Below are positions 5,824-57,100 of a stretch of DNA of 64,000 bases, piece by piece. A program made the translations under genes and the position numbers. Position 1 is the first letter of the stretch; each line of letters starts with the position of its first letter. The DNA is from Anthoceros angustus (lineage: Eukaryota; Plantae; Anthocerotophyta): NCBI GenBank assembly GCA_010909165.1, contig MU008162.1, positions 1,302,001-1,366,000 on the forward strand. The letters run 5' to 3'. The notes beneath the pieces are model-generated. The model saw only the letters and a program-made list of their open reading frames with translations. It did not search any database and had not been told where the DNA came from.

Positions 5824-6150
5824 CGCAGGACTCCAAAATCCTCGACCTTCACGATCCGCGAGAAAGACCAAACAGCAGCAAGCCTGGACGCAACGACGCG
5901 AGCCAAGCCGGGAAGAAACGCGACTCAAAACGCAACCTAGGGCTGGACCGTGAAAGCCGACCGGAGCGTGAAGCAATGCCGGGCATCGCAGGGCCTGACC
6001 GCGGAGCTCGGGAGCTCCAAAATTTCGAACTTCACGCTCCGCGGGAAAGGAAAGATCGAGAGCAGGCGAAGCCGCGACGTGAGCCGAGTCCAGGACAGAA
6101 AAACGCATATTCTAGGGCTCCATCGTGAACCCCGACTGGAGCGTGAAACT
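5810..6150. repeat. Degenerate ~165-bp tandem duplication in the NUP85/nicalin bidirectional promoter
   Basis: 5810-5972 and 5973-6150 share the blocks gcaatgc..ggcatcgcagg, ctccaaaat..cttcacg.tccgcg, cgacg.gagcc and ctagggct..cgtgaa..cgac.ggagcgtgaa. Confidence 0.8.
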
Positions 6151-6204
6151 AAAACCAAAACGAAGCGGGGAGCTGGAGCGAGCTCCCGGCTATGGCGGAG
6201 GCTG

Positions 6205-6300
6205 TGTTGGGCGGAGGTTTTGTTGGGCGGTAGATTTGTTGGGTGGCGGCGGAGGTTTTGTTGGCGCGGTAGATTTGTTGGGTGGCGGCGGAGGTTTGTG
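6205..6300 (+). repeat. ~39-bp GT-rich tandem repeat in the nicalin 5' leader
   Basis: ggcggaggttttgttgggcggtagatttgttgggtggc occurs about 2.5 times. Confidence 0.8.
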
Positions 6301-6313
6301 GGTGTCAGCGGCG

Positions 6314-7930
6314 ATGGCGGTGGGGAAGCTGGCGATGCTGCTGGCGATGGCAGCCTTCACGCTCGGGTGCCTGCTGAGGATGTGCGAGGGGGCGGTGGTG
6401 ACGGAGGTGTTCCGGCTGGTGCAGTACGATCTGAACGGGGAAGCTTTGGGATCGCGCAAGACGTACGTGAACCACTTTGCGAGCGCGGGAACAAACCAAT
6501 CCGGGCAGGACGCCTCCCGGGTGGTGCTGATTCTCCCGGCGAGGGAGCTGGATTTGCCGGGCTTGCAAGAGCATGTGCAGCGGCAGCGGGATCTGGGAGG
6601 GCTGCTGCTGCTGCTGCCGGAGGAAGGGAGGGAATCGGACCTGGAATGGGAGCTGCGCCTGCAGCGGTGGCTGGTTTCTTCCCAGTTCCGCTTCCCGGTC
6701 TACTTTCTCAGATCCAACGAGGAGGTGGATGAGGTTGTGAGGAAGGTTCGGGCGGCAGAGGAGGCTGGCCGCCCGGCGTCCGCCACGCTCGGGGGGTACA
6801 AGCTCTCGGTGCCGGTTGTGGAGGCCAGAAAGCTTCCTCCTGCCAGCCTCGGGATCATCCAGGGATGGCTGCCCGGCCTTCGGGAGGAAGGAGACGAGTC
6901 TGTGCCGAGAACCATCGCGATTGTTGCGCACTACGACACCTTCGGGGCAGTTCCGGGCCTGGCGGCTGGGGCGGACGGGAATGGGAGCGGGGTGGCAGTT
7001 TTGATGGAGCTGGCGCGGCTCTTCAGCAGGTTGTATGAGAGTGGGAAGACTAGAGGGAGGTACAACCTGCTGTTTGTGCTCACATCCGGGGGGCCGTACA
7101 ATTTTGCGGGCACGGCCAAGTGGCTGGGATCGCTGGACCAGCGGGTGAAGGAGAGCATCGAGTTCGCCTTGTGTTTGGACGGGCTGGGGAGGCCTGGGGA
7201 TCGGCTGTTTTGGCATGTGTCGAAGCCGCTGAGCAATGCGGAGATGCAGGAGGTGTATGGGAATGTGGGGAGTGCGGCTGCAGCTGTGGGGGTCGAGGTG
7301 GAGGTGAGCCACAGGAAGATTAACATTTCCAGTTCCCGAGTGGCCTGGGAGCATGAGCAGTTTTCCAGGTACAGGATCATGGCGGCTACCCTTTCCTCGT
7401 ACAAGGGGGGCTCGGAGCTACTGGAGCCGAGGGGAGGGATGTTCGATGGGAGGGGGGTTGTGGGCGATAGGGATGTCTTGCGTGCTGTGAAGGTTGCAGC
7501 GGAGGGGCTCGCCAAGCTTGTTTACGGGTTGAAGGATGTGGAGGTTTTTGCAGAGGGGAGTAGTTTGGCGGTTAGTCCTCTCTACGTGCGGGCTTGGTTG
7601 GATTTCCTGGCTCGTACTCCCCGTGTTGCTCCCTTCCTGCTGAAGAACAGCTCTGTTGTGAGTGCCTTGTTTGACGAGCTCTCGGAGAGGACAAGCGATG
7701 TCACGGTGAGGTATGAACCGTTGGACGAAGCCTTCGTGTTCTACGACCCTGTGAAGGCAACGCTGAGCATTCAGGAGGTTGCGGGAGTGACTTTCGACAT
7801 TGTTACCATGCTTGGAGTTGTCACCTACCTCGGCCTGCTGTTCATCGTGTTGTTGGGGACCACGAAGGGGTTGGATGACATTTTTGATGTGCTCCGGAAG
7901 CCGGCTTCCAAGAAGGTCAAGTCCATGTGA
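6314..7930 (+). CDS. NCLN: Nicalin (M28 peptidase-like ER membrane protein), single exon
   Basis: Signal peptide, then VFRLVQYDL, RTIAIVAHYDTFG, GADGNGSGVAVLMELARLFSRLY, AWEHEQF and a C-terminal TM helix. The likely start is MAVGKL at 6314. Confidence 0.92.
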   Translation: MAVGKLAMLLAMAAFTLGCLLRMCEGAVVTEVFRLVQYDLNGEALGSRKTYVNHFASAGTNQSGQDASRVVLILPARELDLPGLQEHVQRQRDLGGLLLLLPEEGRESDLEWELRLQRWLVSSQFRFPVYFLRSNEEVDEVVRKVRAAEEAGRPASATLGGYKLSVPVVEARKLPPASLGIIQGWLPGLREEGDESVPRTIAIVAHYDTFGAVPGLAAGADGNGSGVAVLMELARLFSRLYESGKTRGRYNLLFVLTSGGPYNFAGTAKWLGSLDQRVKESIEFALCLDGLGRPGDRLFWHVSKPLSNAEMQEVYGNVGSAAAAVGVEVEVSHRKINISSSRVAWEHEQFSRYRIMAATLSSYKGGSELLEPRGGMFDGRGVVGDRDVLRAVKVAAEGLAKLVYGLKDVEVFAEGSSLAVSPLYVRAWLDFLARTPRVAPFLLKNSSVVSALFDELSERTSDVTVRYEPLDEAFVFYDPVKATLSIQEVAGVTFDIVTMLGVVTYLGLLFIVLLGTTKGLDDIFDVLRKPASKKVKSM

Positions 7931-9843: not shown

Positions 9844-12800
9844 CTAGGAGGATGGAGGCGTTTCTATGTCAGAGCCCTTGGGCTGCTCAGCGTCCAAGCC
9901 ACCACCTTCATCATCTGCTGAGAGGTCGCGTAACTCCCTCCTTGAAGAAGTTGGCTCTTCATCCAGCAGCAAATCAGGGTTTACCATTCCTGGACCTGCC
10001 CCTAAAGGCTTTGGAATGCCTCCAGGCGGAACTTGACGTGGCTTGGGAACCTGACCATGACCTCCCCCCCTGCCTACACCTGTACCCAGGCCTAACTGCA
10101 AAGCATTGGCATTGGTGACAGGAATGGCAAGGGTTCCATGCCCAGCACCAGGAGCCAAATTGCCTGCCCCCTGTTGAACCCCATTTTGAGGACCACCCTG
10201 GCCAGTTTTCTTACTATTAGAGTTCGCTGCAGAAGGTTGAGAAGCAGAATTTGCTGCAGGAGAAGGTTGCTGGGCCCTGGGCGGTGGTGACTTTGGACGA
10301 AGAGATTCTATCTCTGGAGTAGTGCCTACTAGGTGAGGAGCATCGACTGGAGGATTCCCTCTGCCACCATGCCACACCTTTCCATCGCCATCGGCATAAT
10401 ACTTCACATATGTCTGCATAAACAGATCACGTGCTTGAGATCGCCATTCACTACCATAGGCAAAACCACAAAAATAACTGATTTGACACAAACTGATGCA
10501 TGAGGGTAGTAAATTGAAGCAGGTCACCGTTGGATTGAAATTAGAAGAGCTAAGGCCCTTGCCCACTGTCAGCCACCCTGCACGGATATTGTGGTCCTCT
10601 CCAAAAAGTTCAATCCGTCGCTGGCCTTGAGCAAAATGCTCAATAATATGATACAACTCTTCTGGCTTTGCAGTAGAGCCTGCAAAGGACAGAGGCACAT
10701 ACACCCGTTACTACGGTAAACAGAAGTCTCCACCAAAGGAGTCAAAATTACAAACCATGTTCAATATATTCACCACATAAAAGACGAAATGCACATGCAT
10801 CCCAGCCAGGAGCGAATCACATACCATAAGCTGGCTCTTCCGATATGATGATGTCCGTATCCACATTGGCATGGATTATGTGCCCGTCCGTGCTCCGTCG
10901 AACTGTGCCTTTTATGCCCATCAAGCAGTGCTCCTGCAACATCCAATTGAACCCAATCAGTTTCCTGTCTGCACAGAAAAGGCTTCTGTCCAGCAAGAAA
11001 TATTCCGTGGTATGCACAACATACCACATACTGATGCAGAAAACCAAGTAGCTCACTAAATCCAAAATGGGAGGCCAGACTCCTTGTTCATACTTTGGAG
11101 TGCTGGAACAGTGTATTTGCATCATGTCGCAAAGCTGGAGTAGGATTTTCCCTGTTCGTCTTCACCCAGCATATGTCTTCACATCTCCGGAAACCCCACT
11201 GCACAGAATTCTTCAATGTCATTGCAGGTACCTCTAGTCCAAAGCCTGGCAGATGAGCCGCGGACATCCAAAGCCAGCATACTCAGAGCCAGCATATCCA
11301 CCACCCCTTACAATGAAAACAACAGTGCGTCTGTCCTACCTTTTTCAAACAGAGCCGCCCCTGGTCAAGCCCCTCAGCATCTCCCACCCACAAGAAAATG
11401 AAAGCAGGTGTATCCGCAATCGCCTACAGCACATAAGGAAAAAACAGTATCAATGTTAAAACATTTTTTACAGCAGGACTTCGACACCTGCCAATCACAT
11501 CATGGGTGTCATTCAAACTTGAGTTTCTTACCTCAATCCGAAGATTTTGAATGTCTTCATACGACCACCACTCCATTGAGTCTCCAACCCCAGGGGCCCG
11601 CCGGACATATTCCTCCCAGGGTGGATCTACAAGAATCACATCAAATTTTGTACCAAACGATTCTGGCCGTAGCTCTGTGGTGCGCAGGTCACATTGCAAA
11701 TACATCGGTGGGCAGGCATGGTCAGCGATAAGCTTATCCTTTCTGGAAATCAGCTCCTTGAGCTTAGGGTACTCCTCAAACCTGTCTGCTAGATCCACAT
11801 CCCTAATAAAATTCTGAGGTCGCAATCCAGTATCCACAAAATGCTGGGAATAATCATTTTGCTCTCCTCTGGATGGTCCCCTGCCAGCAGGAGGATGGAC
11901 TCTTCCTCCCCCTCTAACAGCACCAGGGCCCCTCTCTGCAGGCAATCCACGCCCCCCATAGAGAGGACCACCTCCAAACATGACCCCAGGCATTCCACCA
12001 GGACCTGCACCTCTGCCAGGTGGATTAAAGAACATGTTCGGACCGGGAACAGGCCCAGGTCCGAACCTAAGGCCTGGCCCAGGTCCAGGCGGAGGGCCAC
12101 CCATCATGCCCATGTCTCCCCCTCCTCGGCCACCCCACCCCATAGGTCCACCAAAAGGGGGTAGAGGAAAAACTCCAGGTCCCATGCCAGGTCCTGGCCC
12201 CATTCCAGGTCCCATCCCTGGAAGTCCCGGAGGCCCTAAGTGACCGAAATGATGGCCCATCCCGGGCCCAGGTCCCAGGCCTGGTCCTGGTCCTGCACCC
12301 ATAATAGGAGACATGATCCCCCTTCCGTCTCTTGGACCACTGACCCTTCCTCCTTTGCCTCCCATTCCTCTGACACCTCTTACACCCTTTCCTTGCGCCT
12401 GCATCATTGACCTTGGCATTTGACCAGAACCCTGGTTATTCATACAAGGGACACGACCATCATGGCCCATCATCATGCCCCTCCCTCGGTTGTTTGGAGA
12501 ACCTTTAGGGCCCCTGCCTCGTACAGCATAATGATTTCCACCCTCTCCACCCCCTCTCCCAGGACTGCGCCCATAGCTCTGTTCATGCCCATGAAGACCC
12601 TCATCATCCAGCAAATACCGTTCCCTTGGATCCCCACCAGCAAGATACACACCATCTCCCATTCGCATCCTTTCATCTGGAATGTGGCCATCCCATTCGT
12701 TCTCCCCTAGAGCCATTGCCTCTCCAGGAAACAAATCTCTAGGCGGAAAGGGACCACCGTGAGGCATGGAAAAGCCCCTTCCAGGGTCCATATGCAATAT

Positions 12801-15536
12801 AGGGCCATTCCCTGCACCACGTCCATCATTGCCTTTAACCTTCATTTCCTCCATCCTTTCTCGCTGTGTCCTGTCTCTGTAGTGGTCCTTCCTATGATCG
12901 ACTGACTCCTCCCACTCCCGGCCTTGCTCCCTGCTGTCCCGATCCCATCCCCATTCAATCTCTTTCTCCCAGGCTGGTCTGTCTCTTTCTCTATGTCTGT
13001 CTCGCTGTCTGTCCCGACCCCTTCTGTATACCTTCTCCCTATCAAAGTCCTCTCTTTCCTCTGACCAATCCTTGTCATGATCATCACCTTCTGCGGCATG
13101 CCAGGCTGCTCTCCCATCCGGGCTGGGTGATCCCCTTGCAACTTTTCCACTACGGCTCCTTGAAGCATATCTCATGTCCTCAGATTCTTCCCATCCTGAC
13201 TCATTACTATCTCTGGCCCTCACCCTGTCTCTTTCTTCACCTCCGCGTCCTCCTCTTCTTGATGACCTTCCCACATCCTCAGCACCATCCACATCCTGAT
13301 GAACAATGCGGACCCTGTCCCTGCCACATCGATGCTTATCAAGTTTATCTTCCTCCCCTCGTTTGCTTCTTCCAGCTCTCCCTGTCACTTCCAGCTCATC
13401 CCAACCAATGTCAGTTCTATCCCTCGCTCCTCTCGGCCGATCCCTATGATCCTCCACCCTTTCACTCTTCCTTCCAGCCTGTTTGGCCGGATCTTCAAAC
13501 TCCTCTCCTTCCAATTCAGGATGACCTAGATCCACTCGTTCTTGGCTGTCAATTTTGTCACACCTTGAATCAGGTTCATCTTTAGGATGTCTCATGCCCC
13601 GATCTTTTTCTCGCCCAGTTCTCTTCTTTTCAGAAGAAAGCAGGTTCTCTTGATCCTCCCACCCAGCTCGTTTGTTATCAACCTCCTTCCCCCTCCGGCT
13701 TCTCTTCATATTAACATCTGAACCAGGTCCCTGAAGCTGGACATCTAGGTTTCCCCGCTCCAATCTAGCCTCCCTGAATCCTAAGTCCTGATCATAATCA
13801 TCCATGTCTCCCACCCTCCCAGCTGGACTAACCGACCCCCGGGCAGCCTTTCCACTGCGGCTCTTGCCGGCATGTCTTGTATCTTCAGACTCATCCCAAC
13901 CTAATTGTACAGCATCTCGTCCCCGCAACCTATCCTTCTCGTCATCTCCCCGGCCTCCTTTGAAGATGGACCTTGCCCCATCCTCTAAGTCATAATGGCT
14001 ACCACCAGCTTTTTCCCTGCACGGCCGGTGTTTCTCTAGCCTCTCTTCTTCTCCCCTTTTGCTTCTACCTGGTCGACCACTTCCTTCTAAATCATCCAGA
14101 CCACCATCTGCTCGCTCTCTCCCACTTCTGAGGCGATCCCTATGGTCCTCAACCCTATCATTCTTCCTTCCAGCTTGTTTGACTGAATCCTCCAAGTCCT
14201 CCAATTCAGACTCCCTGTTAGGATGACCCAGATCTACAAGTCTACCTGAGCCATCATCATCCTTTGCTTGTCTCATACCCCGATCTCTGTCCCGCCCATT
14301 TTTCTTTTTCTCAGCAGCAAGAGAGCTTTCTTGGTCGTCCCGCACAGACCTCCTACTTTCCAGGTCTCTACCCCTCCTACTCTTCTTGGAGCTGCCATCC
14401 AAACCTAACACCGTGAATTGGACATCCTGTTTCCCCCTCTCAATCACGTCATCAGCTCGTAGTTCTTTCCCATCTGCAGACTCGTAGACTAAATCATGGC
14501 GTTCCCCACTGGCATTATCAACCTCTTCCTCACTGCGATGTTTGTCAGATTTGCGGCCCGTCTTCCCTTCAGAAGCTCTCTTACCTGAGCGTGAATCTAA
14601 AAAGTCACCTGTGATGCTGACAACCAGATCCTTCTCCCCCTTCGCCCCAGGTACAGTGATCTTTCTGCGGGCGAGACCTGAAGCCTCTTCCTTCAGTCCC
14701 CTCTCAAGTCTGCCTGATTTCTCACCTTTCTCCCTCCTACTCTCAGACTTTCCTCTGTCATCCACATCCTTGAGCTGCTTGCTGCCCCCTTTGAACTGCT
14801 TCTCAGGGTGCTCCTCCCAGTCCCTCACTTCTTTGAACTCACTGACATCATTCACCGCCACATCCTTGAAAGACCTGTGTGTTTTCCCTCCTTTCTCGTT
14901 GTAATCGTCCTGCACCTCCCTAAAAGACCTTTCACCTCTGTCATAGTCGGCTGTGTGCTCCTTTCCCCCTCTTGCCCCTTTCTGAACAACTTCTTCAGCG
15001 GGCTCCTCCCCGAATCTCCAGCCTCTGTCACCATACTCCTCACACTCCTCCTTCACCTCCTTCGTGCGCATCGATCTGTCCCCCCCTCTACCCTCAAATT
15101 CGTCTCTGACATCCTTAGACCCCCGCGACACCCTCTCCACCCACTCCTCTCGGCCGGCGCCATCAGCCCTGGAAACCCGGTCCGATCTTGACGATCTTTT
15201 CTCCTTACTCCCCTTCTCCACCCCATTCCTCCTCTTGTGACTTAACCTACCCGCATCCTCCGACTCGTCCCACAGCCCCTCCACTCGATCGCCCCGCTTC
15301 TTTCCACTGCCCCGGTCCTCATCCACAACCTCAGCAAACCCGTCTTGCTCCTCGCCCCGACCTCGCCTCCCTGCCGGCTCCTTCTCGCTCTTACCTTTCC
15401 TTGACTTCCCATACCTATGCCGCCGGTCCGGCTCTTCCCACTCCCCTTCCCTACCCTTGTAGTACTCGGAGCTCTCCGAGATCTTCCGCCGCTTAGCCAG
15501 GTCATGCTCCTTATTGCTGGCTTCGGGGCTATCCAT
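9844..15536 (-). CDS. MTB: m6A mRNA methyltransferase subunit MTB (METTL14 orthologue)
   Basis: A ~4-kb first coding exon ends [21 protein letters not shown]...[19 protein letters not shown]. Downstream exons give [48 protein letters not shown] and [20 protein letters not shown]. Confidence 0.95.
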
Positions 15537-50899: not shown

Positions 50900-53796
50900 A
50901 TGGCCACAATATGGCAACCAGACCCCTTGTGGACCCAAGAAATTGGTGTGAGTACATGGATTCTACGAGGAGCTCCCGCTCACCTCGTCTTGGGGTGTCA
51001 ACCGCTGGCAAACAAAGCCTCCAGGTGCAGCAGTGTAAGAAGCCCAGCACTTCCACTTCCGAGAAAGTGTGAGGGTAGGGAAGGGGTTTCCAGCGATAGC
51101 CTTTGCCAGGAGCAGGAGCGCTTGTGGCAACAATTTTTTCTGGACCCTACCATGTGGCGGGACAACAGACGGGATAAGAAGAGCTCCCGTTCGCCTGACT
51201 ACCGGCATAAGGGGTCCGGCGAGGTGCTGTGGTTAAACAACATGTTTAAGCCAGCTTGGGTTGATGAGCAGCTCATTTCTTTGAATATGCAGATGGGCCA
51301 TGGTGTCTCTCCTTCCAAGTTCAGCTCTCTGGATAAGCCTGAACCTGGTAGCCGTGGAGAGTTGGAAATGGGCGGCGTAACGGCTGGAACCGTGAGCTGG
51401 TTATGTCAGCAGGGGGAGCTTTCTGAGGCCGTTGGAGCCCTGGAATCTCTGGCGCAGACAGACTCAGTTGTTCCTCAGTCTCTGTTATACACTGTGCTAA
51501 AACTGTGTACAGCTAAGAAGGATTTGGTTGTGGGGCGACGAGTTCATAATCTCACTGCCAAACTTGGGTACGAGTCAAGTGCATACTTGGGGAATCATAT
51601 CTTGCGCATGTATGCATGTGGGGGTAGGCTGCAGGAGGCCTTGGATGTTTTCACCAGGGTGGGTAAACCAAATGTCTTCATGTGGGTTTCCATAATTTCT
51701 GCACATGCTAACCACGGGAAACCTAAGGAGGCCATACAACTCTACCATGAGATGCGTAGGTCAGGAGTGAAGGCAGATGCTCACGTCTTTGTAGCTGCCC
51801 TTCAAGCTTGTGCATTGCTGCCGACTTGGAATCTGGCAGAAAAGTGCACTGTGATGTGTGCAGAGTGGCATTCCTACTAACTTGTTTGTTGGCAACTGCC
51901 TGGTGGACATGTATGCAAAATGTGGTGAACTGAAAGATGCACGCCAGGTTTTTGACAGCATGGCACAAAGGATGTGGTGACATGGAATGCCCTGATTGCT
52001 GGGTATGCACAGCAAGGACTCGGCCAAGAGGCGCTTGTGTATGGACAAATGGAGCAGGAGGGCCTCATTTTGGCTGACTTTTTGCTTGCCTTCTGAAGGC
52101 CTGTGCAAGCACTGGTCTCTTACAGAAGGGCAGGCAGCTGCACTCACAGATTGTCAAAAGAGGACTGCTGGATGACGTAGTGGTGGGCAACTGCCTGGTG
52201 GACATGTATGCTAAATGTGGTGAACTGGAAGATGCACGCCAGGTTTTTGAAAGCTTGGTCACAAAGGATGTGGTGACATGGACGGCACTGATTGCTGGGT
52301 ACGCACAGCAAGGACTTGGCCAAGAGGCGCTTGTTCTGTATGGACAAATGGAGCAGGAGGGCCTCATTTTGGCTGACAATGTTACTTTTGCTTGCCTTCT
52401 GAAGGCCTGTGCAAGCACTGGTGCCTTACAGAAGGGCAGGCAGCTGCACTCACAGATTATCAAAAGAGGACTGCTGGATGACGTAGTGGTGGGCACCTGC
52501 CTGGTGGACATGTATGCAAAATGTGGTGAACTGGAAGATGCACGCCAGGTTTTTGACAGCATGAACACAAAGAATGTGGTGACATGGAATGCCCTGATTG
52601 CTGGGTATGCACAGCAAGGGCTCGGGCATGAGGCGCTTGTCATGTATGGACAAATGGAGCAGGAGGGGCTGATTTTAGCTGACCATGTTACTTTTGCTTG
52701 CCTTCTGAAGGCCTGTGCAAGCACTGGTGCCTTACAAAAGGGCAGGCAGTTGCACTCACAGATTGTTGAACGAGGACTGTCGCATCACATAGTGGTGGGC
52801 ACCTGCCTGGTGGACATGTATGCAAAATGTGGTGAATTGGAAGATGCACGTGAGGTTTTTGACAGCATGGCGACAAAGGATGTGGTGACATGGAATGCCC
52901 TCATATCTGGGTACGGTACTTGTGATAAAGGTCACAGGGCACTAGCTTGTTTTGAGGAGATGTTAGTTGCTGGTGTTCAGCCTAATGACGCGACTTTTAC
53001 TTGCCTTTTAGCAGCATGCAGTCATGAGGGGCTGGTCCACGATGGTCATAAGCACTTTGATTCCATGGCTGAACAGCATGGCATCAAACCTGCTATTGAG
53101 CATTACAACTGTATGATTGATCTTCTTGGGCGTGCTGGGCATTTAGATGAGGCAGAGAAGATGCTATTATCATGTGAGGGCCAAAGTAATGTTGTGGGAT
53201 TGACGACTTTGTTGAATGCCTGCAAAAGTCACGGGGATGTAGAGAGGGCGATGTGGTGTTTTCAAAGCATTGTTAGGCTGGTCCCCCAGGAGGCGCCCGC
53301 CTACGTGCTCATGGCCAATGCCTATGCAGATGCAGGTAGGTGGACCGATGTGGACAGGATCGAAACACAGAGAAGGGCAGCAGGAGCTAACAAGAATCCT
53401 GCAGTGGTTAGCATTGAGGTGAATAACGAGGTACACAGATTTCTGGTGGGAGAAAAGAGAAAGGATATTGCGCTTAAGGTAGAGAGCACAAATGCACGTT
53501 TGAAGTACGAAGGAGGCCACGTACCTCACACAAAGTTGGTACTGAAGCCTATGTGTGAGAAGGAAAAGGAAGATGTGCTTTGTGGGCATGCTGAGAAGCT
53601 AGCTCTAGCGTTTGGTCTATTGAACACTCCAAGTGGGACACCTCTGGTGATAACGAAGAATCTACGCATGTGCAGCGACTGCCACAGTTCCACGGAGATC
53701 ATGTCAAGGCTTGAACAGAGGGACATTGTTGTAAGGGATGGTTACCGTGTGCATCGATTCGCAGCTGGTTGTTGCAGTTGTAAGGGTCGACCTTGA
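50900..53796 (+). CDS. PLS-class PPR-E-DYW:KP (GRP type) organellar RNA-editing factor with an N-terminal OSB-type PDF motif; frameshifted at ~51815-52090 (pseudogene or assembly error)
   Basis: ORF 50900-51880 (PDF-like motif plus the first PPRs) and ORF 52180-53796 (PLS triplets, P2L2S2, E1/E2, NPAVVSIEV...HAEKLALA...CSDC...CSCKGRP*) join into one collinear array after correcting -1, -1, -1, -3 and -7 nt lesions. Confidence 0.9.
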
Positions 53797-54131
53797 GAAT
53801 AGTGAAGAAGTAGCCAGTGCTTTTGTGCGAGAGATGCCCGCGGTTATGAATGCGTCTGAGCACTTGAACGTGTCCAATGGGTTGATGTCCCGTTTGCGGG
53901 TTTGCTAGCGTGTGTGAACTGTGAAGGACTTTTGTGCTTCCAAGAACACGAGGCCACCGGTGCGCCCAACGAGATTGGCTAGGTAGTACAGAAGCAAATA
54001 GCTAGGAAAGAAGCAAGTACCGGTATCCTAGACCATATAGAATGTCATGAATAGTGTTGCGGTTGTGTTGTTTGCATGAGACAATCGGTTGTTCGCAAGA
54101 CAGTTGACTTCATTAACCAGGTGCAGCTCGA

Positions 54132-57100
54132 TCATATGATGCCTTTGCTCTTCAAAAAGGCTTCCTCAGAGGGTTCTCTACCCAAAAAATTCTTTATAAT
54201 CTGGGCAGCATCAATCTGTGCTCCAGGAGCTAGTACCTGGAATGGAACACGAACAGGATAATCAGTCCCTCGTCCTATATTGTGCAAATGCAGTTTTCTG
54301 ACGCCGAGCCTATTCATAAACGAGCAGGAATGAACCTTTTCTCTGTACTCCCGTCCGGCTGCGGTGCTAAGGACATTACCCTTGAATTTTGCGTCAAACA
54401 TGTCAGCAGAGAAAACCTGCAAAACGGATGCCCCGCAGTTAGGATCTGAAGGGTAGGATGCGCAGAACGTTATCAAGGTCATGATGTGTGCTGCCCTCAC
54501 CTCACTCCACAGGTACCCGTAATAGGCAGCATCATAACCACCAACCAAGTGACTGAAGGAAGCACTGAAGTTAGTTCCTTCTTCAAGTGGAATACCCTCC
54601 ATTACCTGCCACGTCATTTGGAGCCTCAGCGATAGCATATGAGGCCACCCATACTTGCGACAATCAAAACATGACATGATCCTCTAAAACTTCAGTGGAC
54701 ATACATCTACCTGTGGATGCAGTTCTCTAAGGATAGCTGTGGTGTCTGCCTGCTCAGAGGTATGAATGGCTTGGTCAAGGAGGCCTGTCCATGCAAGAAC
54801 GGAAATACCTCAAATCTCACAGATTTCAGACGTGTCACGCTGGAATAACGAAGCAGTTGTGCTCTACACTAGAATAGCATGAAAAGAGTCAGTTGCAGGC
54901 CAAGCATAAGAACACACCAAAAAGCAGTTGTCTCTTAGTTAATAGCCCAGCATGCGCTCTCTTCTTTGCCATCAAGGCATCACATATTGCATCTGGAACA
55001 GGTTGCTTGATATCCTGCAATAGGCAAGGGAGTTACAAGTCAAGATGTGAAAACACCCGTCACATGACTCTTTCTAAGTTACTCATCCAGTACGGCACAA
55101 AATGGCCAGAAAAGCGGTCGAGATGCATGCCTTGTAGAAGCCACTCATAAGCTTCAGCGAGTCCTTTTCCACGCACCTGGGAGCCAGAAACTTTAGACCC
55201 ATTCTAGAGAGGTTTTACAACAACATACTGACACAGCAGACAAAGCATTGTCACCAGTTTTCCAACATCTGGCTGGGAGCTTCAACAAAGTCGTCTTCAA
55301 CTCTAAGGCCAGAAAAGCGTGAAAATGAAGACCGGCTGCAGAGGTGATGCATCTGCAAACATGCTTACAATTAAGGTTGAAGCAATCCTTCCACAAGCAA
55401 GAGCTGTAGATCTGGTGGCTTACAAGGCCATGTGAAAACATGAGTCGCAAATCTCTAACACACGAGGAACATACCAGATGTCCGAACTCATGGAAGTAAG
55501 TCTCCACCTCAGAATGTCCGAGCAATGATGGTTTCCCTTTGCTTGGTTTAGGAAAGTTTGCAAGCATGGCACCTACTGGCAACTGCAGAAAGTACAGACA
55601 ACGTAAAGGACAGCAGATTGTAAACTGCAGCTTTCCCAACCTCACACAATCAGAGAAAGTAGCACAGAGGTAAAGATGCCTGACATACCATTCGCTCCCC
55701 ACTTTCCTGCACACAACCAGGTTGCAATGAACAGACACAGGCATGGCCATACTTCCCCTCACTGTTCAGATGGAGGCAACATGTCAGTGCTTCTGAATAG
55801 ACACACTTGACGATGGTTATTCATTCAAATGACAAGCCAAACCTACCGAGGATAGAGGTCAAGGTAGAAATATCCCATTAGCTCCCCCGTACCAGAATCA
55901 GAAACAGAGAACAACCGGACTTCTGGATGCCAAACCTTTGGATGACTCATTACTGAGAATCTCAAGCCTGCAAAGCCCATGGTACACTACTTTCAATCTA
56001 ACAGCAAGAACTCTTTGTCGTAGTGAAAACGAAGTGACGTCATCATGCCAAAATATCAAGAGGACATTCATACCAAGAAGGTCTTGGTATATTTTCAAAA
56101 GGCCGTGAGTCACAACTTCCATGGGAAAGTACTCCTTGACTTTCTCATAGTCCACCTGAAACTCGATCTCTTCAGCTCTACGCATATAATATCGCAGATC
56201 TGCCATTCCAAAGCTGTCATGACCTTCCTCTTCTTTCTGCACAGAGTGACTGCTCGTTTGAGACCATCTAACACTGTAAAAAAATTGGTCTACTTGCCTT
56301 CAACAACATAGAAGATGCTTCTTCACGGTGTTGGGTGAGAACCTTCAGTGCTTTGAGTACTTGCAGCTCCTTGTTGGCCAGGATTGAGATCCTACTTGAA
56401 ACACTTTCCAAAAACTCTTTCACCTGTTCAGCATTAGACCATAAATGTATATATGAGGACATTGCAAACTTCTGATAAGAGTGCAATATACTGCCAAGCA
56501 CTGCCAGTCACAGCTCACACTCAGATACAAAAGAGTAGCCTGTGCCAGATGCAGCACGTCTTTCCAATGCATCACCTTTTCTGGTGTCTTTGCCATTCGG
56601 ATTGCTATGGAATATTCTGCATGATTATTGTAACCCAACAATTTGGCCATCTCATGTCTCATCTCGACCTGCATCACCATTGAGGTCAGTACAACGCGAG
56701 TCATCTAGTAAAGCATGAGTATCATGCATAAGGAGAACAACCTAGGCCAACCAGATATTGCAGGACAGGCCTGGAAAGTGCTTACCACTCTTTCTAGAAT
56801 TGGTAGATTTTCTTTCAAACATCTCCGATCGAAAGCACAGGACACTTCTCTCCTTGTGGCACTCACCTGTTGCAGTACACAGGGACATTAAAACAGGGAA
56901 AGCATGTAGGGCAGAGTGAGATTCTTGAGGGAACGCAGCGATATTCCTAAAATGCCTGGTTGTAACATAAACAAATCAAAGAGATGACCTTGCATTGCTC
57001 CATGATGGGAAAGTAATGAGGATACTTCAAGCTGACTTCCAGCTTCCCATCTTTCGTTCGATTGAGCTCCTAAACAAAGAGGCAACGAGGCCCATAAGGT

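Follow-up and report, generated by a model that had tools for sequence, protein, structure and literature searches.

An N-terminal OSB-type PDF motif on PLS-class PPR proteins: a probably decayed gene copy in the hornwort Anthoceros angustus and intact carriers in other seedless plants

In the usual description, a PLS-class PPR editing factor consists of a targeting peptide, a PPR array and E/DYW domains, and relies on helper proteins acting in trans. A locus of the hornwort Anthoceros angustus raises the question whether such a factor can also carry, in its own chain, a PDF motif as found in OSB proteins, and what this motif would do there. OSB proteins (OSB1-4 in Arabidopsis, OSB2 being the same as PTAC9) bind ssDNA in organelles and combine an SSB-like OB fold with 1-3 or more PDF motifs at the C-terminus. 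The locus lies in a stretch of 64,000 nucleotides from contig MU008162.1, which was analysed as a whole and is called the window in the following. It had been interpreted in a preliminary description as an OSB-type PDF motif fused to a PPR-DYW:KP RNA editor. With a conserved and well-folded extra domain of this kind, the editing apparatus of mosses, lycophytes, ferns and hornworts would have one more component.

The PLS-class PPR gene at positions 50900-53796 on the plus strand is, in our view, probably decayed. It comprises a presequence, one PDF, a linker, a PLS array, the E1/E2 motifs and, at its end, a GRP-type DYW:KP-like domain. The ORF with the PDF domain (50900-51880, plus strand, 326 aa) begins with the ATG at 50900, includes only the first PPR motifs and is terminated by the stop codon 51878-51880. 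Its residues 1-60 (50900..51079) are disordered in the AlphaFold2 model (pLDDT 32-40) and represent a presequence that probably acts as an organelle-targeting peptide. The PDF domain follows at 51098..51286 and is supported by an OSB-only profile, phmmer, pLDDT and Foldseek; the core motif initially noticed spans 51122-51274. Residues 134-156 (51299..51367) form a flexible linker to the PPR part, with pLDDT values below 50 compared to more than 90 on both flanks. The first PPR helices (51383..51877) are read in the same frame as the PDF, with the Pfam families PPR, PPR_2 and PPR_1 matching residues 256-305, and the helix pairs from residue 162 on are modelled with pLDDT 92-98. In the modelled 326-aa ORF, the PDF segment is an independently folded module of approximately 65 residues, which a disordered stretch of approximately 23 residues connects with the PPR solenoid. 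Further downstream, a broken stretch (51815..52079) is followed by the PLS array of near-identical 306-bp P-L-S units with P2/L2/S2 and the E1/E2 motifs, as recognised by Pfam (52180..53388), and by a DYW deaminase-type domain of the GRP-type, DYW:KP-like but with NP for KP (53389..53796, stop codon 53794-53796), all on the plus strand.

The 51 residues translated from 51122-51274 on the plus strand are identical to the sequence originally quoted, and their assignment to the OSB-type PDF motif is borne out by profile, similarity search and fold. A profile built exclusively from OSB motifs (312 PDF motifs from 135 non-PPR proteins) finds a single match in the six-frame translation of the window, namely the PDF segment, with 70.2 bits and E-values down to 1e-15 even at database-sized search space. 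When a 75-aa segment was compared by phmmer with 1.84 billion representatives, a threshold of E<=1e-3 was passed by 554 proteins, of which 130 remained at E<=1e-10. Among them are proteins named by NCBI as OSB3-like (Chenopodium, E 7e-50) and OSB1-like (Populus, E 1.5e-20), both of which bear the Pfam SSB domain. The invariant D22, R24 and D34 as well as ten near-invariant PDF columns are all retained, corresponding to the signature W..(L/F)F..P..WWDNR..K....PDFKHK..GE.LWL....P.WV, and the sole change in the conserved columns is the conservative replacement of F35 by Y within the 'PDF' triplet. Word-indexed protein searches with the PDF segment returned the query only, which carries no weight because the index demands several shared 5-mers. 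Judged from sequence and predicted structure, homology of the segment to the OSB motif is nearly certain.

The PDF is modelled with a pLDDT of 92.9 and has beta strands between two helices. A Foldseek search against 550,000 Swiss-Prot models matched only Arabidopsis OSB1-4 (E 6e-6 to 3e-4, TM 0.69-0.84); over the aligned stretches the PDFs are 36-42% identical and superimpose with an rmsd of 0.8-1.3 A, predicted models being compared on both sides. Moreover, three PPR/DYW clusters of the ESM Atlas (57-127 members each) have a representative with the PDF fold at TM 0.86-0.90. Among solved structures, neither a sequence match nor a fold match was found, the best VIA-align Z being 3.9. ESM Atlas phage clusters with Pfam Phage_gp49 (score 0.75) had raised the idea of a phage link of the PDF, which is unsupported: the Atlas shape search yielded two viral clusters at TM 0.63-0.68, but Foldseek of the PDF against BFVD gave nothing, Pfam and PHROG scans of 137 PDFs found no significant family, and the phage matches were not reproduced with a canonical OSB PDF as query.

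The gene at 50900 shares with OSB1-4 the PDF module itself with all conserved positions. Nevertheless, it does not encode an OSB protein, since an SSB/OB-fold domain is absent (Pfam SSB gave no match at E<=1 in the 326-aa ORF) and the 60 residues before the PDF are modelled as disordered. Furthermore, its PDF is N-terminal, not C-terminal, and is followed by the PLS array, E motifs and the DYW domain. The PDF very likely belongs to one gene with the PPR-DYW array, because the PDF and the first PPR motifs share one ORF and the remainder is collinear. Locus L001 from another sample also contains a PDF ORF plus PPR-E-DYW in collinear arrangement with 50900-53796, as judged among other things by tblastn. 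There, the PDF ORF and the PPR ORF were called as two genes 43 nt apart, and the break between them may be an intron. This two-gene call would favour the view that the PDF is an artefact, its resemblance being due to chance or the stretch being part of an OSB-like gene of its own that happens to lie upstream of the PPR gene. Such an artefact is hardly credible in view of the E-values of the profile, the joint ORF at 50900-51880, the missing SSB/OB-fold domain upstream, and 31 proteins in which PDF and PPR occur in one chain.

With respect to the downstream part, the Pfam PPR families score with E 1e-45 to 1e-66 on the 538-aa ORF, where PPR, PPR_1 and PPR_2 match 7-9 stretches and E_motif covers residues 351-413 (E 2.7e-12). 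The 306-bp P-L-S repeat units show 92% mean column identity. The DYW_deaminase domain (PF14432, E 5.7e-33) is 63-64% identical to that of relatives ending in GRP, and the zinc ligands HAE and CxDCH (CSDCH here) are retained in alignment with them. The C-terminus of the protein is the non-DYW triplet GRP, after which a hornwort DYW:KP subgroup is named (PMC9478123). The proteins of this GRP subgroup are candidate U-to-C editing factors (Gerke 2020 and Gutmann 2020, as cited in PMC9478123). The DYW:KP subclass is defined by Lys-Pro where DYW:PG has Pro-Gly (PMC11845758). In the present copy, the KP pair is absent: the N-terminal box of the DYW domain reads K-N-P-A-V-V versus K/R-K-P-A-x-A in GRP and DRP relatives, with Lys changed to Asn and Pro-Ala retained. 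The gene resembles the hornwort GRP-subgroup PPR-DYW:KP proteins in its PLS triplets, E1/E2 motifs, DYW-type domain with HAE and CxDCH, and terminal GRP, whereas the additional N-terminal PDF, NP in place of KP and the broken frame set it apart. The proposed fusion to DYW:KP holds only partly: the PDF shares its ORF with the first PPR motifs and the array is collinear, but the frame is interrupted and KP reads NP.

After 51880, the rest of the PLS-E-DYW gene continues collinearly but in other reading frames, as seen in three-frame translation. Within the broken stretch the frame changes four times, and besides the stop codon 51878-51880 there is a 3-bp deletion that leaves the frame as it is. 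Two of the frame changes are located near 51815 and 51860; the other two coincide with the loss of 1 bp (51963/51964) and of 7 bp (52078/52079). These two losses and the 3-bp deletion (52037/52038) are evident when the stretch is aligned with the two 306-bp PLS units that follow it; tblastn places a frame switch at 52078. We infer that the copy at 50900-53796 is likely non-functional; being broken, it is not itself an 'editor', contrary to the label that it had received. The gene is a member of a very large family of near-identical sequences. Its CDS is covered by 10,000-46,000 short contigs of paralogues, and this contig depth begins at approximately 50914, shortly 3' of the ATG 50900. Because the public contigs of the family, only 65-116 nt long, stem from many paralogues, the present copy is not separable from them. 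An extra T after 51814 occurs in approximately one fifth of the contig depth, and many contigs diverge from this copy at 51858-51859. The frame breaks may be an assembly error, as the check on them consists only of these short contigs of many paralogues. The sequence family is also present in runs guessed to be RNA.

Does the fusion occur outside this locus? A PDF followed by a PPR array was found in annotated proteins of Ceratopteris, Adiantum, Pteridium, Selaginella, Diphasiastrum and Sphagnum, and three Pteridium transcripts hold PDF and PPR in one chain. Examples are KAH7429238 and KAH7415344 (Ceratopteris), KAI5076972 and KAI5061374 (Adiantum), XP_024517303 (Selaginella), KAJ7568880 (Diphasiastrum) and CAM6033764 (Sphagnum). 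All PDF-plus-PPR proteins examined (31/31) have 1-3 PDF copies N-terminal to the PPR array, the same order as in the window. In the carriers from public databases, such as those listed above, the PDFs are 47-57% identical to the one in the window. In contrast to the copy in the window, these carriers are intact gene models that end after the E motifs or in DYW:PG. Intact homologues of the PDF-PPR fusion hence exist, but none of these carriers has a DYW:KP domain. In Sphagnum and Diphasiastrum, canonical DYW:PG proteins have the N-terminal PDF, and in ferns, Selaginella and again Diphasiastrum it is found on PLS proteins that lack a DYW domain. This speaks against the link between PDF fusion and U-to-C editing that had been implied. 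Because the fern, lycophyte and Sphagnum carriers end in a canonical DYW or lack the DYW domain, the PDF-PPR fusion is old and not specific to U-to-C editing. The contigs of the nearest GRP/DRH/DRP-type relatives fetched (56-62% identical) contain no PDF; therefore, the PDF module is optional. None was found on PPR proteins of Arabidopsis, and PDF-PPR fusions were seen in seedless plants only, with none found in seed plants. In a PDF tree, PPR-linked PDFs cluster, with 8 label changes compared to 14.4 in shuffles, the 68 columns being too few for a verdict on a single origin. As presumed in the preliminary description, no searchable paper was found that describes such a fusion. Its carriers are already present in public databases, where they are described only as 'hypothetical' or 'PPR-containing' proteins.

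Regarding the function of the PDF in these proteins, its position gives a hint. PPR arrays run parallel to the RNA that they bind, the N-terminus of the protein lying at the 5' end of the RNA, so that the tethered PDF of intact relatives would sit just 5' of the sequence recognised by the PPR tract. There it would most likely add a sequence-independent grip on single-stranded nucleic acid, which would raise the affinity or keep the target unfolded, and the PDF would be a built-in helper that takes no part in catalysis. Designer DYW:KP proteins edit U-to-C without PDF (PMC9478123), hence in such designer proteins the PDF is dispensable for U-to-C catalysis. We give the role of an accessory single-strand binder, for RNA or DNA, a little less than an even chance. 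The PDF is the part of OSB1 that binds ssDNA (PMC6963530, PMC6451138), and recombinant OSB1 and OSB2 favour ssDNA over dsDNA or RNA (PMC4166229, PMC6963530); their preference over RNA is an argument against a purely RNA-directed role (PMC4166229).

The ssDNA preference of OSB1 and OSB2 (PMC6963530, PMC4166229) would also suit a different role, in which the PDF tethers the protein to ssDNA that becomes accessible in organellar nucleoids during transcription or replication and thereby permits co-transcriptional editing. The PDF is reported as the ssDNA-binding element of OSB, PPR-linked PDFs retain every conserved residue of the OSB motif and hold the conserved aromatic and basic signature at least as strongly as OSB PDFs, and the flexible linker would fit tethering. 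However, close GRP/DRH factors lack a PDF and designer KP proteins edit without it, hence tethering is not a general requirement, and we consider such a nucleoid tether rather unlikely. It is quite improbable that the PDF is a protein-protein module that oligomerises or docks to OSB or other nucleoid proteins without contacting nucleic acids. OSB2 has been reported as tetrameric (PMC6963530), and PDF tandem arrays, which reach 12-13 copies per protein, would be suited for avidity or scaffolding. However, the literature ascribes ssDNA binding to the PDF motif itself (PMC6963530, PMC6451138), and its conserved Trp, Phe, Arg and Lys would be usual for single-strand contacts. The proposal that the PDF steers the deaminase-like DYW domain to ssDNA and thus to editing of organellar DNA draws only on the adjacency of a domain described as ssDNA-binding and a deaminase fold. 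It is very improbable, given that a DYW domain is missing from many PDF-PPR proteins, that the PPR array in between is an RNA reader, and that the PDF and the catalytic domain lie at opposite ends of the protein.

In its role as an accessory single-strand binder, the PDF may be compared with the MORF/RIP and ORRM proteins of seed plants, which raise RNA binding or efficiency of PLS factors; the analogy would be a functional one only, as these helpers have unrelated folds and are separate polypeptides. MORFs are limited to seed plants (PMC13386178). It is tempting to see PDF-PPR proteins as an ancient editing-factor design of seedless land plants, in which PLS factors are held on nascent transcripts or nucleoid ssDNA by a built-in single-strand-binding domain that does the work of a MORF-type helper. 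In this broad form the idea is doubtful; if true, it would explain thousands of editing events without MORFs in hornworts, lycophytes and ferns. The only studied relatives of the PDF bind ssDNA in organellar nucleoids, so that the PDF could connect nucleoid DNA with RNA editing in a concrete way that is open to experiment. Finally, designer PPR editors derived from seedless lineages have so far omitted the N-terminal region, and the PDF is therefore of relevance to those who build them.

The assignment of a short segment to the PDF motif, which is known from plant organellar ssDNA-binding OSB proteins, is supported by four agreeing lines of evidence, i.e. a single-sequence search, a profile made from non-PPR proteins, the conserved positions and the predicted fold. 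The 51 residues quoted in the preliminary description are the exact translation of positions 51122-51274 (+) and belong to an ORF of 326 residues, whose ATG lies at 50900 and whose stop codon is at 51878-51880. When all six frames of the window were scanned with a pattern and with a profile, this PDF-like segment was the only one detected. A phmmer search of 1.84 billion representative proteins with the 75-residue stretch 51086-51310 returned 554 matches at E<=1e-3, of which 130 reached E<=1e-10 and 16 reached E<=1e-30. The majority of the matched proteins have 250-650 residues with one to several matched stretches toward the C-terminus; several contain a Pfam SSB domain (protein matches P0004, P0022, P0030, P0035), and two are named by NCBI as 'protein OSB3, chloroplastic/mitochondrial-like' (Chenopodium) and 'protein OSB1, mitochondrial-like' (Populus). 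Pfam holds no model for the PDF motif. Scoring against a PDF profile had been set beforehand as a test, and the OSB-type profile, built from 312 motifs of 135 phmmer matches without PPR that had themselves been retrieved with the window segment as query, gave a single match in the window at 51098-51286 with 70.2 bits (E 9.6e-15 with the whole library as search space). Across 137 aligned motifs the columns D22, R24 and D34 are invariant, and the window segment retains all three; at the near-invariant columns (W10, P17, W20, K27, P33, F35, L44, W45, P52, W54) its sole departure is a Phe to Tyr exchange in the eponymous triplet (F35).

From the same 137-motif alignment, AlphaFold2 predicted a confident small fold (pLDDT 92.9, pTM 0.79) with short beta strands between two helices. 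In a comparison with 550,129 Swiss-Prot models, only Arabidopsis OSB1, OSB2, OSB3 and OSB4 matched it (E 6e-6 to 3e-4, TM 0.69-0.84, rmsd 0.8-1.3 A), and more OSB-type proteins with this fold were found among the AFDB cluster representatives. No solved structure resembling the PDF was found by sequence, Foldseek or VIA-align (best Z 3.9). The AFDB matches also include two representatives of unstated origin, A0A7S2HFR7 (TM 0.82, 24% identity) and A0A3M1NXI7 (TM 0.62). Two viral (Uroviricota) clusters appeared in the ESM Atlas at TM 0.63-0.68; a phage link of the fold was unsupported by sequence checks and a BFVD check.

A model of the complete 326-residue ORF was based on 23 aligned PDF-PPR N-termini. 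On the plus strand, the ORF encodes a disordered presequence (residues 1-60, pLDDT 32-40), the folded PDF domain (residues 61-133, pLDDT 82-96), a disordered linker (residues 134-156, pLDDT 45-56) and, from residue 162 onward, regular PPR helix pairs (pLDDT 92-98). Since residues 256-305 are also matched by Pfam PPR models, the PDF and the first PPR motifs share one reading frame; as modelled, the PDF is a tethered, independent module ahead of the PPR helices. The downstream ORF at 52180-53796 (+), comprising 538 residues, contains nine PPR stretches, an E motif and a DYW_deaminase domain (Pfam, E 5.7e-33), which ends with GRP, is 63-64% identical to GRP-ending relatives and keeps HAE and CxDCH. 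GRP and DRH are the two DYW:KP subgroups of hornworts (PMC9478123). The KP box at the start of the DYW domain (53401-53418) reads K-N-P-A-V-V instead of the K/R-K-P-A-x-A of the GRP relatives, so that in this copy Asn takes the place of the Lys that defines the KP pair (for the KP/PG definition see PMC11845758). The active-site Lys in T-K-N-L-R is retained.

The coding sense shifts through all three frames in the interval that separates the two ORFs. Positions 51860-52797 hold three tandem 306-bp P-L-S units with 92% mean column identity, the first of which is the damaged one. Compared with the next two units, it carries deletions of 1 bp (51963/51964), 3 bp (52037/52038) and 7 bp (52078/52079), and two additional frame changes occur near 51815 and 51860; the protein of a related locus aligns collinearly to the window with a frame switch at 52078. 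An extra T after 51814 is found in about one fifth of the public-contig depth, and many public contigs diverge from the window copy at 51858-51859, which fits lesions private to this copy. An assembly error is a formally possible cause of the frame breaks, as no public contig (65-116 nt) spans this particular copy, but base-calling errors are an unlikely source of multi-base deletions. As assembled, the window copy is a pseudogene, and nothing is expected to work at this locus because the gene is broken. Of the initially proposed fusion of a PDF motif to a PPR-DYW:KP editor, the PDF on a PPR editing-type gene thus stands, whereas the gene is frame-broken and its KP pair reads NP.

The window copy belongs to a very large family. 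At an identity of at least 95%, four public runs placed 10,923 to 45,902 short contigs (65-116 nt) on the region, and their summed depth reached 1e5-1e6 over about 50914 to 53802 compared to flanking values of 0.6-1,300. The limits of this depth coincide almost exactly with the start and stop codons; hence, it is the coding sequence, and not the flanks, that the paralogues have in common at 95% or more. Such coding-only sharing is unexpected under segmental duplication and hints at gene conversion, or at retroposition without UTRs. In run X3, a public sequencing run guessed to be DNA, PDF-segment and DYW-segment depths are of the same order, so the PDF-bearing N-terminus appears about as abundant as the C-terminal domain, which is a rough reading rather than a copy number.

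The fusion is not restricted to this family. At least 15 of the best 150 of the 554 phmmer matches also contain a PPR array. PDF-PPR proteins were found in the ferns Ceratopteris (KAH7429238, KAH7415344), Adiantum (KAI5076972, KAI5061374), A. nelumboides (MCO5580573) and Pteridium aquilinum (three transcriptome ORFs), in the lycophytes Selaginella (XP_024517303) and Diphasiastrum (KAJ7568880, KAJ7231026) and in the moss Sphagnum compactum (CAM6033764), whose C-terminus is a canonical DYW. The PDF also occurs in 10 of the best 120 PLS matches to the second ORF, including Sphagnum fallax and two Diphasiastrum proteins with a DYW end, and an ESM Atlas shape search gave three PPR/DYW clusters (57-127 members) whose representatives carry the PDF fold at TM 0.86-0.90. 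All 31 PDF-PPR proteins examined have 1-3 PDF copies ahead of the array, 3-79 residues from the first phmmer-detected PPR, and the PPR-linked motifs retain the PDF signature at least as well as OSB proteins. The nearest relatives of the window C-terminus among the best 120 end with GRP, DRH or DRP (56-62% identical), and on the contigs of four such relatives (57-62% identical) no PDF was found in any frame. At a related locus in the same sample as these contigs (L001), a PDF ORF and, 43 nt downstream of it, a PPR-E-DYW:KP-like ORF are arranged collinearly with the window. At L001:6001-8506 the two ORFs comprise 162 and 657 aa, the latter with a K-T-P-A-K-A box and an ERRN end, and either a short intron or a frame break may account for the 43-nt gap; upstream, in head-to-head orientation, stands a 1,007-aa PLS gene that has no PDF. 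This distribution marks the fusion as an old and optional one that does not depend on the KP type. Hence, the suggested special link of the PDF to U-to-C editing was not borne out, since the motif also sits on DYW-ended proteins and is absent from the four near GRP/DRH/DRP-type relatives.

A review reports no OSB detected in Selaginella (PMC4166229), although this genus does have a PDF-PPR protein (match P0124, XP_024517303); in this lineage the PDF may survive on PPR proteins only. Further PDF motifs were found in proteins of Coptis (P0041, KAF9616283), Striga (P0047, CAA0829756) and Kingdonia (P0001, KAF6142360), where the architectures are a kinesin-motor gene model (3 copies), a protein with the name 'Interactor of constitutive active ROPs 2' (3 copies) and a protein of 1,160 residues in which 12-13 PDFs stand in tandem and Pfam recognises no domain. 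Either gene-model fusions or additional architectures may underlie these cases.

As had been supposed, the association of a PDF domain with a PPR editing-type gene is apparently undescribed: the literature searched, with partial coverage, contained nothing relevant to a PDF-PPR fusion. Among the non-subscription papers covered, searches for the PDF motif with PPR or pentatricopeptide yielded only reviews that deal broadly with organellar DNA replication, and a 2026 survey that covers editing factors and domain fusions kingdom-wide makes no mention of OSB or PDF (PMC13386178).

What could the motif contribute? PPR arrays bind RNA in parallel orientation, which would place a flexibly linked N-terminal module immediately 5' of the recognised sequence. 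There, the conserved Trp, Phe, Arg and Lys of the PDF would be suited to contact single-stranded nucleic acid, and such a grip could raise the affinity or hold the target open. We tentatively favour this sequence-independent single-strand grip as the most likely role. The main rival, tethering of the factor to nucleoid ssDNA, seems to us less probable; it draws on the ssDNA preference of OSB proteins, since, in reviews, the PDF of OSB1 is stated to be sufficient for ssDNA binding (PMC6963530; PMC6451138), and OSB1 and OSB2 to prefer ssDNA over dsDNA or RNA (PMC4166229). Catalysis does not require the PDF, given that U-to-C editing by designer KP proteins that lack it has been observed in bacteria and in human cells (PMC9478123).

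Elsewhere in the window, a 1,370-aa ORF at 11424-15536 (-) matches no Pfam family, and an ORF at 6125-7930 (+) has a Peptidase_M28 match. Adjoining the PPR gene, exon-sized ORFs with Pfam Peptidase_M3 matches (E 1e-13) at 54132-56242 (-) point to an intron-containing M3 oligopeptidase gene.
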